A stretch of DNA of 64,000 bases from Salpingoeca rosetta (lineage: Eukaryota; Protista; Choanoflagellata). Numbering within the stretch: position 1 is the stretch's first letter; every line of letters starts with the position of its first letter. Below, in pieces: positions 6,720 to 52,828 of the stretch. The translations under genes and the position numbers were made by a program. The stretch is from contig JAWQFM010000031.1 of the NCBI GenBank assembly GCA_033442325.1, positions 67,898 to 131,897 on the forward strand. The letters run 5' to 3'. Under the pieces are notes generated by a model. That model was not told the DNA's origin, did no database searches, and worked only from the letters and a program-made list of their open reading frames with translations.

Positions 6720-7958
6720 ATGATGATGGGGGTTGCTGTTGTTGTTCTGCTCGTTGTTGTTGTTGGCGTGCTTGCTGCCACTGCTAGTGCAGAGGTGGTG
6801 GTGGAGCAGGTGGATGACGGCACGGGAACGCTGGCCATCACCACGAGTGCGCATGGCAGCGAGGGCAATGGGGTCGGCTCGGTGCTCTTCAACGGCGAGG
6901 ATGTGCTTGGAATGCTCGACAACGTCAAGGCAACTGCGTCAGCCATGCGCCGCGCCGTGACGCGCCTGTGCAACCAGCATGGCAAGATCACCAGCTTCAT
7001 CGCCGTCACCAGCGGGGCTGACGCATGGTCCGGCGGCGTGCTGGCCAACAACAACAAGATCTACGGCATCCCTTACAACGAGGAGAATGTCCTTATCATC
7101 GATACGATCTCCCATACGGTGTCAAAGATCTTACTCCAAGGAGCATCCGGAGACCACAAATGGCAGGGTGGCGCATTCGCCGGAAACGGCAAGATCTACG
7201 CCTGCCCGAACGACGCAACCTCCGTCTTGGTTGTCGACACGATATCAGAAACGGCAAGCACAAGCACCATCACCAACCTTGATTCAGGGCGTGACAAGTG
7301 GTCTGGGGGCGCACTTGCTGACAACGGCAAGATCTACTGTGTGCCCCACGATGCGTCAGCTGTGCTGGTCATTGACCCGGCTTCAGACTCTGCAGACGCC
7401 ACAACGCTCAAACACAAGTCGCCCGCAGGTTCGAGCAACCTGTGGGCAGGTGCTGTGCGCGGCAACGACGGCAACATCTACGGTGTTCCGTACAGTGGAG
7501 CAACCATCTTGAAGATCAACCCAATCACCGATGAGATCACTCACATTTATCCTGGGCTGCCCACTGGCAAAAACAAGTGGCGCGGCGGCGTGATTGGCCG
7601 AGATGGGTTGCTCTACTGCATCCCATATCGTGACACGCGCATGCTGGTCAGCGATTTGGACAGTCAGCGCTCTTTCTTCTCTGTTGCTGATGGAGCGGAC
7701 TCCTCGTACAAGTGGGAGGGTGGTGCGCTTGGCAGCAATGGGCGCATTTACGGTGCCCCGTCCTCAGCGTCGGCAGTGCTGATGTTTGACCCTGCGACAT
7801 CCACAGCAGACACGACGAGCCTTGCCATTGGAGCGCCAGCAGAGCCGTCTCAGTCACGCAAGTGGGATGGGTTGGTTGCTGCGCCCAATGGGCTGTTGTA
7901 TGGGATTCCGCGCAACTCGGACCATGTGCTGGTGATTGACCCACGCTGCCACTTCTGA
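6720..7958 (+). CDS. Intronless secreted protein: signal peptide, short N-terminal beta/coiled-coil module, seven W-x-G-G repeats (predicted 7-bladed beta-propeller), copy A
   Basis: 412-aa ORF with hydrophobic leader MGVAVVVLLVVVVGVLAATASA and seven ~46-aa repeats of consensus W-x-G-G-x-L-x-x-N-G-K-I-Y-x-x-P-x(5)-V-L-x-I-D-P; ends IDPRCHF. Confidence 0.85.
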   Translation: MMMGVAVVVLLVVVVGVLAATASAEVVVEQVDDGTGTLAITTSAHGSEGNGVGSVLFNGEDVLGMLDNVKATASAMRRAVTRLCNQHGKITSFIAVTSGADAWSGGVLANNNKIYGIPYNEENVLIIDTISHTVSKILLQGASGDHKWQGGAFAGNGKIYACPNDATSVLVVDTISETASTSTITNLDSGRDKWSGGALADNGKIYCVPHDASAVLVIDPASDSADATTLKHKSPAGSSNLWAGAVRGNDGNIYGVPYSGATILKINPITDEITHIYPGLPTGKNKWRGGVIGRDGLLYCIPYRDTRMLVSDLDSQRSFFSVADGADSSYKWEGGALGSNGRIYGAPSSASAVLMFDPATSTADTTSLAIGAPAEPSQSRKWDGLVAAPNGLLYGIPRNSDHVLVIDPRCHF

Positions 7959-8387
7959 TCTCTGTGTGCGAGTTTGTGTGTGTGTGTGTGTGTGTGTGTG
8001 TGTGTGTGTGTGTGTGTGTGTGTGTGTGTGTGTGTGTGTGTGTGTGCGTGTGTGTGAAGACCTTTTTCCATTTGCGTGCATTCTGCTTGTTCTCAGCGTG
8101 CCTTGCAGCGCACTCTTATTTCCTTCGTTACTTTGATCTCTTCTGTTGTACGTTCTTCGTGTTGTTACACCCCTTTGGGCGATCGTGTGCCTTGCTTCTG
8201 CCATCGAGCTCACTCCTCTGTGTGAGCCCCTTCGCTGTCGTACCTTCTGCCCTGATCTGTTCACGTGAAAGGCGCGGTATGATTCCATGCAATGTTAACA
8301 AAGAGTTTGGCTGGAATTTTGGTCGGTATTTTTCACAAATCGCCAACACCCAAGATGACTTGGCGGTCCGCGATGATTTTTTTGACA

Positions 8388-50687: not shown

Positions 50688-51895
50688 TGTTCAACTTGTT
50701 ACAGTTGCGTGCCTTGTCGTTCTTCGCTTGCAGGAGCGTAGCCACGAAGAGAATTGAAACAAAAGGCACGGCCAGTGTAAAGGCCACGCACGCCAAAGTG
50801 CGCTGTGCGGCGGTGTGCGTTACTTCTCACAAGGTGGCAGGCAGCGGTGGCGTGTTGTGTAACAGCAGTAGCCAAGCCAAGGCGTTCATGCACACGTGTG
50901 CTCTTCTGGTGCTCGTGTGGCAGCAATGACGACCGGTGGGTGACTGCAGATGATGACGCCGAATGTTGTGTGAAATCATTGGTGAATCGCCACAAAGTCG
51001 TGAGTGCCTCGTTCTTGTTGGCTTGTTGTTAGGTTGTTTCACACGACTACACCACGCTCCACGACCACGAAAGCGCGGGCGAAACTGCGAAAGGTCTGGC
51101 AGGAAGCAAAGGAGAAGGGTGTTGTCATTGTTGTTGTTGAACTAGTGAACTGGAAGGGAAGGGATAGCTAATGCGGAAAGAAGGGGAAAGAAGACGGAAC
51201 GAGAGAACGAGTGAGGGTGCTGAGAATGGAAAAGTGCTGACAGTAGGGAACAACTGAAGCTGTACACTTCAGGACTACAGCTACAGGCTGACACGAAAAG
51301 CTAGGACAGAGAGAGAGAGCACGAGCTTGGCGCAACAAAGACACAAGGTGACAAGAGAGCTCTGTGTGAAGGTATGCAAACACGTTCACGGTGGTAAGGG
51401 TAGAGCAGAAGGATTAAGAAACTACAATCAGGGGAAAAAAAAGAAAGTAACAATGTCGAACACTGGAGGACTCTGACTAGAGGTGGAACTGAGGAGAGTG
51501 GAGTTGCTAATGGGACAGGAAGCTGCAATGGGAAAGAAGACAAGACTCACTCAAAGCTCTAAGCGCCTTCCAGAACAGCAGGGCTTCGAAGAAACGAACT
51601 GGTGCCGCTAGGTAAGTAGGTAGAACTAAGGCCTGGCACACTCACGCAGACACGAAAATCATGGATAGTGTGGCGGTACTACGCAACTGAATGGAAAACG
51701 AAACGAGGACAAACACAACACAGTGAGAGAAGTCAGGGAGGGAGGAGCACACTTGTCTGCACGACGATCAGCAGTTCAGCGCGTGTGACGTGTTGTGACA
51801 GAGGGGCAAACAGCTCCACTGGCTGCTCATCAAGGCGCATTCCTGTGAGCAGGCTGGCCAGCAGTGCTCAAACAACGCCATCGCCCATCGGTGTA

Positions 51896-52828
51896 TCAGC
51901 GCACGTACAGCTCCATGAACGCTGCATTAGGGTATCGCCCAAGGAATCCCAGAGTGGATCTCTCGGCAGTTGGACTTCCAGTACTTGGCCCAAGGGAGCC
52001 ACTGTTTCCAACACCATCCAGAGGGCATCCTTGATTGCTTTGGAAACTCCAAGCAAAACCACAGGTGTGAACGTTCGGGTTGGGATCATGGTCGCGAGGG
52101 TTGACGTAAACCTTGGTGTCACACCGATTGAGATTGCTTGTAATGTTCTGTTGTGTCGCAGCAAACGACGGACAGCCTGAGGAGCAGGGTACTGGAACGC
52201 CAGCAAATAGAGATGAAAGGGACTGCTGGGCGAGCGCGTCCTCGTATGCGATCCACTCGCCAATATCCGACACGAAGAGCAAGTCCGTTGTCTGACCGAA
52301 CCAAGCCGTACCCTTGAAGTCGCCGCTGCCGTGCACGGTGCCCACCAGTTCGCTGTTAGACCACAGACTGCAATTAGTCCAAGTCCACGTAGCCACGCCA
52401 TCGTTGGAAAAGCGGGCTGCCAGCGTCCATGGGCGTGCATCGCCGCCAACGAGTCGCGTCTCGCACTTGTGACCAAGAAAAGCGGCGGTATCCAGTCCAA
52501 TCGAGCACGGGTGTATGGAGGAGGAACTGCCACGAGCCACATTGACGAGGGACGCCACCGTGTGTTGTAGTTCTTGCACATCCACGCCATTCACCAGCAC
52601 AGGCTGGGAAGGGTCCGTGGTGTTGATGATGAGGCGACCATGATCGTCTTCGCCCAGCCAAGCTTTCCCAGTGCAGCTGCTGCTGAAGCCAAGCAGCAGC
52701 AGAACAGCGCAACTGAGAGTAGCGAGAACGCCAAGTGCGCGAGGAGGAGGAGAAGGAGGGGAAGCGGTGCGGCAGCATCTCCCTCGCCATGACAGCGACA
52801 GTCTTGGCCACGACAACGCAAAAGCCAT
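51896..52828 (-). CDS. Intronless secreted or signal-anchored protein with the shared N-terminal module and a fibrinogen-like/intelectin-like C-terminal domain
   Basis: In-frame ATG 52828 within ORF 51896-53071; hydrophobic LGVLATLSCAVLLLLGFSSSCTG. C-x(5)-GG..WTLAARFS, LWSN..VG, GDFKGTAW and terminal MELYVR resemble fibrinogen-C/intelectin motifs (CDM..GGGWTLVA, NWAN..FG, DDYK, LLFYR). Confidence 0.65.
   Translation of the reverse strand: MAFALSWPRLSLSWRGRCCRTASPPSPPPRALGVLATLSCAVLLLLGFSSSCTGKAWLGEDDHGRLIINTTDPSQPVLVNGVDVQELQHTVASLVNVARGSSSSIHPCSIGLDTAAFLGHKCETRLVGGDARPWTLAARFSNDGVATWTWTNCSLWSNSELVGTVHGSGDFKGTAWFGQTTDLLFVSDIGEWIAYEDALAQQSLSSLFAGVPVPCSSGCPSFAATQQNITSNLNRCDTKVYVNPRDHDPNPNVHTCGFAWSFQSNQGCPLDGVGNSGSLGPSTGSPTAERSTLGFLGRYPNAAFMELYVR

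Follow-up and report, generated by a model that had tools for sequence, protein, structure and literature searches.

In cubilin, residues 36–135 (PDB 6GJE) contribute about three short β-strands per chain to an intertwined β-helix built by three chains, which continues into a trimeric coiled coil (Larsen et al. 2018, PMC6283879). The open end of this β-helix docks on β-helix 1 of amnionless (PMC6283879). Collectins and ficolins are secreted proteins in which an N-terminal oligomerizing region and an α-helical neck present three C-terminal recognition domains. Here, we analyze a stretch of 64,000 nucleotides from the choanoflagellate Salpingoeca rosetta (contig JAWQFM010000031.1, positions 67,898 to 131,897), referred to as the window (C31:67898-131897 in the 55.4-Mb assembly of 68 contigs that was searched), which contains three intronless genes, A, B, and C. 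An earlier note on this DNA had proposed that the three encoded proteins carry the same motif right after the signal peptide, followed by a stalk and different heads. We find that A, B, and C probably belong to a very large family of intronless choanoflagellate genes whose secreted proteins form a three-chain β cap and a coiled-coil stalk. Each chain would follow one plan: a signal peptide, then at the mature N-terminus a module of ~32 residues, an α-helical stalk of variable length, a cysteine (Cys), and finally a head for binding at the C-terminus.

The module common to A, B, and C occupies the ~32 residues immediately after the signal peptide and is followed by a heptad stalk and then a Cys. 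In an alignment of 75 N-termini, it starts a few residues behind the hydrophobic leader and has the consensus G-E-V-x-L-x-E-D-D-x-G-A-[LF]-H-I-N-T-S-D-P-x-S-Q-P-V-[FL]-V-N-G-V-[ND]-V, with invariant D, V, N, and G residues and a nearly invariant N-T-[ST] sequon. The module has three short β-strands, ~11 residues apart: E-V-x-L-x-E-D, A-[LF]-H-I-N-T-S, and P-V-[FL]-V-N-G-V. In none of the proteins scanned is the module covered by a Pfam model, and our literature searches found no paper describing either the module or this intronless family. The module is an undescribed domain, built on a design principle that is already known.

Gene A (6720–7958, plus strand) is an intronless coding sequence for 412 amino acids, delineated by its open reading frame (ORF). 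It comprises a hydrophobic signal peptide predicted by eye from the sequence (6720–6791, residues 1–24, ending in ATASA), a divergent module (6792–6905, residues 25–62), in which an 8-residue insertion separates the second and third strands in the alignments, a short stalk that ends at Cys84 (6906–6971), and a seven-blade propeller head (6972–7955). Gene B (8388–9713, plus strand), also intronless, encodes 441 amino acids from the ATG at 8388; its open frame begins at 8292 and ATGs exist upstream of 8388, and it is the Met at 8388 that precedes the hydrophobic leader. Its module (8469–8561) corresponds to D60–V90 of the ORF starting at 8292, and is followed by a heptad stalk of ~52 residues ending at Cys143 (8562–8720) and a seven-blade β-propeller head (8721–9710). 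Gene C (51896–52828, minus strand), an intronless coding sequence for 310 amino acids, combines a signal peptide with a canonical module (52577–52669, K54–V84), a short stalk ending at Cys108 (52505–52576), and a non-propeller head (51899–52504, residues 109–310). The 46-kb span that encloses the finding is a mere envelope of three separate genes. Assembly gaps at 11131–11230 and 37049–37406 lie outside all of them, the nearest gene end being at 9713, so continuity across the gaps is irrelevant to the finding.

The kinship of the three copies was assessed using a leave-out hidden Markov model (HMM), built from 68 other family members without the window genes and the four paralogs of C, with E-values computed for a 12,000-protein proteome. 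Gene C scored 61.5 bits (E = 2.4e-17), gene B 20.1 bits (E = 2e-4), and gene A 17.4 bits (E = 1.4e-3), against a top score of 9.5 bits among 6,000 shuffled N-termini. In pairwise BLASTP, B and C gave a weak match (E = 0.007), and A found no match to C. A and B are divergent members of the family, since the family profile, and not pairwise BLASTP, secures the link; judged by these scores, gene C carries the canonical copy of the module. The three segments recognized in the earlier note all score significantly with the family HMM, each at the place it had given, and the variable-length stalk with a Cys that it had described behind the motif is likewise present in all three genes. A six-frame scan of the window revealed no module copy beyond A, B, and C.

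Outside the window, the module is abundant. A profile made from the three sequences returned 144 matches in the S. rosetta genome, nearly every one within an unbroken open frame of 400–600 amino acids, and a 75-sequence profile raised the count to at least 150 genome copies, all with E ≤ 5e-8 (150 of the 179 candidates were scored). One contig, C4, which at 2.5 Mb makes up ~4.5% of the genome, holds 48 of the 150 scored copies. Many copies on this contig are only a few kb apart, and truncated ones occur among them, a pattern that points to a hotspot where copies multiply in tandem and decay. Assuming ~12,000 genes, at least 150 copies would amount to more than 1% of S. rosetta genes, intronless and with one-third of them on a single contig. 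The suggestion that a profile would find further members is borne out by this census, on a scale far wider than three genes.

The stalk varies in length, with 54 to 215 residues between the module start and the third residue past the Cys, and is rich in Gln, Ser, Ile, and Ala in the 75 N-termini. Measured modulo 7, the spacing between the invariant N-G and the Cys belongs to one of two classes in 61 of 70 genes (chi-square p = 2e-24, uncorrected for relatedness), and hydrophobic positions keep a heptad pattern from the module onward. Thus, the stalk behaves as a continuous coiled coil, the length of which changes by whole or half heptads. Its core positions are Gln-rich: one of the two is occupied by Val/Ile and the other, in alternation, by Gln. 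Beta-branched core residues alternating with Gln are typical of trimeric coiled coils.

An oligomer was modeled from three copies of an 85-residue canonical N-terminus of the family (L037) using single-sequence ESMFold2, without a family alignment. The three-copy model scored 0.84, compared to 0.29 for the best of three controls. The mark used for such scores is reached by 21 of 30 proteins solved as one-chain pairs and by none of 23 solved as single chains; among eukaryotic proteins, it is reached by 17 of 29, but by only one of the seven that lack an older solved relative. Three-copy runs agree in at least 94% of contacts, with a partner pLDDT of at least 91. In the model, residues 13–15 of one chain pair with residues 25–27 of the next, and this strand pairing closes a three-fold ring. 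From residue 32 onward, coil contacts follow a 3–4 spacing and are in register between chains. The homotrimer with an intertwined β cap and a coiled coil, which the earlier note had postulated, finds its support in this control-passing L037 model, for which three copies were tried.

A predicted trimer of this kind would work as follows. Three chains would interlock through the module, with each strand pairing with a strand of the neighboring chain, and the resulting small β cap would nucleate and register a parallel, three-stranded coiled coil. The coiled coil would, in turn, present three heads at its far end, a set distance from the base, and three heads so arranged would bind a repetitive ligand multivalently. 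We infer that the family serves in multivalent recognition of an extracellular ligand. Bases and heads would also recombine with each other, a possibility illustrated by the A/B pair, described below, where DNA identity begins at the stalk–head junction.

Two other readings of the module bear on this model. The module could be an oligomerization element of another order, forming dimers or tetramers, or a generic coiled-coil leader without fixed stoichiometry. Predictors tend to build any number of helices supplied, and three copies were the only number modeled; in addition, the stalk core is Gln-rich, and we know of no simple rule for the assembly of Gln-rich coiled-coil cores. However, the three-copy model is confident and reproducible, its inter-chain strand pairing closes a three-fold ring, and the β-branched Val/Ile that alternate with Gln in the core speak for three strands, making a different order quite unlikely. 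Alternatively, the module could be a signal for sorting or processing, for instance a propeptide or a tag that directs the protein to a secretory compartment, the theca, or the matrix, and no oligomerization domain at all. Consistent with such a role, it always sits directly behind the signal peptide, carries a nearly invariant glycosylation sequon, and is kept across unrelated heads. Yet no dibasic or other cleavage motif follows the module, which is in heptad register with the stalk and belongs to the trimer interface in a high-confidence model, and some proteins contain tandem module arrays, an unusual arrangement for a signal of this type. We consider a sorting or processing role very improbable, and retain the trimeric base as the preferred reading.

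Most heads behind the module are β-propellers. In a census of 80 distinct ORFs, 71 have a propeller of the DUF6923 family, five have a head of the gene C type (including C itself), and four are truncated. The heads of genes A and B match Pfam DUF6923 (PF21959) with 37.9 and 33.6 bits, respectively (cut-off 27). The propeller consensus consists of seven W-x-G-G-V-L-A-x-N-G-L-I-Y repeats between the first and the last conserved Cys; in gene A, these are recognizable as seven W-x-G-G...G-x-I-Y repeats. AlphaFold2, run on 62 family sequences, predicts a closed β-propeller of 28 strands in seven blades (pLDDT 91.1, pTM 0.91). The seven-blade propeller proposed in the earlier note is, therefore, borne out as a model by the repeats and the confident prediction. 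The A and B heads resemble DUF6923 proteins in passing the family cut-off and in their modeled seven-blade fold; the function of DUF6923 is not known, and its Pfam model excludes the N-terminal module and the stalk. Top Foldseek matches are generic seven-blade propellers (TM 0.75–0.84, 10–21% identity), the nearest solved folds being virginiamycin B lyase, a YVTN S-layer propeller, and Bacteroides glycan-sensor propellers.

The most variable propeller columns return once with each blade, directly ahead of the conserved Trp and directly behind I-Y-x-x-P. The usual propeller topology would place such per-blade columns in loops of one face, and the variable columns of this family probably form such loops. 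Two Cys residues, the first at the stalk–head junction and the second in a C-terminal D-P-G-C, are conserved in nearly all family propellers. A disulfide between these two may close the propeller or connect chains.

The propellers of A and B share 80% protein identity. Their DNA identity is at background up to position 7015 in A and 8767 in B, and rises to 85–100% from 7016 and 8768 onward. The region of high identity (7016–8030 in A versus 8768–9785 in B) runs past the stop codon into ~70–100 bases of the 3′ untranslated region, and the 5′ parts of the two genes, comprising promoter, leader, module, and stalk, do not align in DNA. The breakpoint coincides with the stalk–head junction. This pattern looks like gene conversion, or like a recombination breakpoint at a domain boundary. 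It would have arisen either through copying of the head from one gene to another with a different base or through replacement of the base. Directly behind both stop codons lie long (TG)n/(CA)n microsatellites (7959–8061 in gene A and 9714–9792 in gene B), and similar TG/CA tracts are common over 9.7–11.6 kb, around the first assembly gap.

Gene C, the paralogs of which include PTSG_09713, PTSG_09705, and PTSG_03109, has a head of another kind, possibly a very divergent fibrinogen-related domain. This head has no direct match in Pfam (E up to 1) or in the PDB (E up to 10). A profile of the head finds a bridging protein, P0116 (E = 5e-12, 32% identity over 91% of the head). P0116 then matches the fibrinogen beta chain in its A subdomain (E = 0.0044) and scores 14.7 bits against Fibrinogen_C (PF00147), under the cut-off of 22. 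Look-alikes of the head found with a language model include clusters with some Fibrinogen_C members. Thus, of the fibrinogen/intelectin-like head that the earlier note had assigned to C, what stands is the link to fibrinogen through P0116 as an intermediate, and what fails is any direct match. A fibrinogen-related head is possible, not established.

The module was also found in other organisms and on other heads. A search of 1.84 billion cluster representatives with the module profile gave 109 matches at E ≤ 0.001, and those that carry a label are choanoflagellate. In S. rosetta itself, PTSG_10030 joins the module to a TNFR-Cys head (TNFR_c6), PTSG_04970 to a PQQ-like propeller, and PTSG_09905 to a head of no recognized type. 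Monosiga brevicollis MONBRDRAFT_37065 has the module with a TNFR-Cys head, and a Microstomoeca roanoka protein has three tandem modules, a Cys-rich region, and a propeller. Unlabeled environmental proteins (from Logan, ENA, and JGI) add Kelch, SBBP, FG-GAP, PQQ-like, and receptor-L heads. In total, at least eight head types stand behind the module across choanoflagellates and unlabeled environmental sequences; the constant base with different heads, first proposed for three genes, is far more widespread than these. A word-based homolog search with the module region of one member, P0070, returned the query itself only.

Some family members depart from the common layout. Tandem modules, two or three per chain and some with short coils between them, occur in P0044 (from M. 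roanoka), P0088, P0031, P0035, P0045, P0040, and P0022, and may be single-chain versions of the three-chain cap. P0031 also has a weak, sub-threshold match to a CofB β-repeat. In P0098 (633 amino acids) and P0105 (PTSG_08527, 960 amino acids), the module lies mid-protein, after an internal hydrophobic leader, and is preceded by an IDO and a TSP1 domain, respectively; both are more likely gene predictions fused in error than true architectures. A module-plus-Kelch protein, P0061, is encoded at 3001–4050 of L071, a JGI metagenome contig of 87.5 kb with a GC content of 52%. The contig is dense, with intergenic gaps of ~60–140 bases, and P0061 adjoins the small subunit of ribonucleotide reductase and TPR proteins; the contig may derive from a giant virus or from a compact eukaryote.

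A similar strand-turn-strand motif, which gives weak profile matches, is found in phage tail-fiber-like repeats (R-I-D-S-S-G-N-V-G-I-N-T-S-x-P...L-x-V-N-G) and in PEGA domains. Unlike the module, these repeats are internal to long bacterial, phage, and archaeal proteins, are not N-terminal, and have no coiled coil after them. They match part of the module profile with ~10–20 bits per repeat, and partial matches of this strength within internal repeats indicate a resemblance of motif rather than kinship. Accordingly, the phage-tail-fiber-like and PEGA-repeat proteins (P0110/P0112; P0015, P0067, P0091, P0111) were rejected as relatives. A weak TNF/C1q hint from Pfam at the C-terminus of the M. 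brevicollis protein P0073 was also discarded, as the PDB search did not support it.

Several points weigh against the reading of A, B, and C as members of a family of trimeric binders. The trimer model is a single-sequence prediction for which only three copies were tried and the calibration refers to two copies, leaving room for dimers or tetramers. It was made from a canonical member, L037, and not from A, B, or C, and the modules of A and B are divergent. Secretion of the family proteins is predicted from hydrophobic N-termini alone. No ligand is known, and the generic nature of the nearest propeller folds gives no function. For the head of gene C, AlphaFold2 run on five sequences gave a pLDDT of 29, which is unusable. 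Finally, the head census covers 80 distinct ORFs and leaves out ~70 further module-bearing loci and short frames of 204–216 amino acids.

In three stranded RNA-seq runs, genes A and B have reads in the sense direction at low to moderate depth, with no splice joints; the first mate maps to the minus strand, consistent with plus-strand genes. Both genes are thus transcribed and intronless. The sole RNA joint, seen in all three raw-read runs, is a 31-base back-step at 8399–8429 of gene B, in a repetitive stretch that codes for the poly-Val leader. It may reflect a difference in repeat length between strain and assembly, or an effect of alignment. The neighbors of the three genes in the window include a PDZ protein, an ABC-transporter exon, and a HYDIN/CFAP65-like flagellar gene, none of which suggests a functional link. 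The last of these is a very large open frame on the minus strand (53338–63939), directly upstream of gene C, with Ig-like (ASH/MSP) domains of the HYDIN/CFAP65 type found in the flagellar central apparatus; it appears unrelated to the module finding.

Choanoflagellates live by bacterial capture and respond to bacterial cues. Secreted, putatively trimeric binders that vary at recurring per-blade positions are an obvious candidate for the choanoflagellate–bacteria interface. S. rosetta is described in PMC6333174 as amenable to transfection.

The comparison with cubilin has two sides. In both systems, the mature N-terminus of a secreted protein supplies strands that interlock the chains and leads into a coiled coil bearing domains for ligand binding, although for the module this arrangement is a predicted one. 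In cubilin, EGF and CUB domains follow, whereas the module proteins carry propellers and other heads (neither domain is detected by Pfam in A, B, or C), and cubilin is one gene, as opposed to at least 150 module paralogs in S. rosetta. A search of all PDB sequences with the 75-sequence module profile, at E up to 10, returned chance matches only and no cubilin chain. Aligned by hhalign to residues 22–71 of cubilin 6gje_B (100% identical to the PDB chain), the module gave a probability of 4.5% over 19 columns. The best alignment sets P-V-F-V-N-G-V-N-V on K-I-K-L-N-D-E-D-L at the strand–coil junction, the correspondence that the earlier note had proposed, but homology with cubilin is not upheld by these searches. 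Nor is an amnionless-type docking partner: a six-frame search of the whole genome with PF14828 (Amnionless) yielded no credible gene, and the single match, which at 20.3 bits fell short of the cut-off of 30.4, was rejected as a low-complexity artefact. With no amnionless homolog recovered by PF14828, the idea that the proteins are held by a common receptor stays conjecture.

These results bear directly on whether the module could be a true counterpart of the cubilin N-terminus, with its open, three-chain β-helix docking end-to-end on the single-chain β-helix of an amnionless-like membrane anchor and thereby tethering many soluble heads to the cell surface for capture or endocytosis. The layout matches that of cubilin residues 36–135, with three strands and then a trimeric coiled coil (PMC6283879; L037 model), and hhalign sets the last module strand on the strand–coil junction. 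Moreover, the module starts within a few residues of the predicted cleavage site of the signal peptide, which would leave a free β edge, and proteins with three tandem modules could form the single-chain counterpart. The failed PDB search, the low hhalign probability, the low-complexity nature of the one Amnionless match, and the lack of EGF or CUB domains after the stalk all argue to the contrary, as does the finding that no candidate partner adjoins A, B, or C in the window. Docking of this kind is, therefore, unlikely. In its boldest and equally doubtful form, the module would be a pre-animal ancestor of the cubilin N-terminal β-helix, and any one of more than 150 interchangeable trimeric subunits with diversified heads would be held by one or a few amnionless-like membrane anchors. 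If true, choanoflagellates would possess a large combinatorial repertoire for surface recognition of bacteria, prey, or self, and the cubam design would predate animals.

Compared to collectins and ficolins, the family of trimeric binders favored here would share the secreted state, the N-terminal oligomerizing region, and the helical segment that would present three C-terminal heads; with ficolins, it possibly also shares a fibrinogen-related head, in gene C. Collectins and ficolins have a collagen-like region, whereas no Gly-X-Y run is present in the 75 module N-terminal regions, and their N-terminal Cys-rich segment is replaced in the module family by a predicted β cap. Unlike the lectin heads of collectins and ficolins, the heads of the module family are mostly β-propellers. 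Through this family, one can ask in concrete terms how multivalent recognition outside the cell came about before animals existed, and whether the architecture of cubilin and amnionless originated in unicellular organisms. Animal collectins, ficolins, and cubilin all rest on the combination of an oligomerizing base and exchangeable recognition heads, and this choanoflagellate family would rest on it as well.

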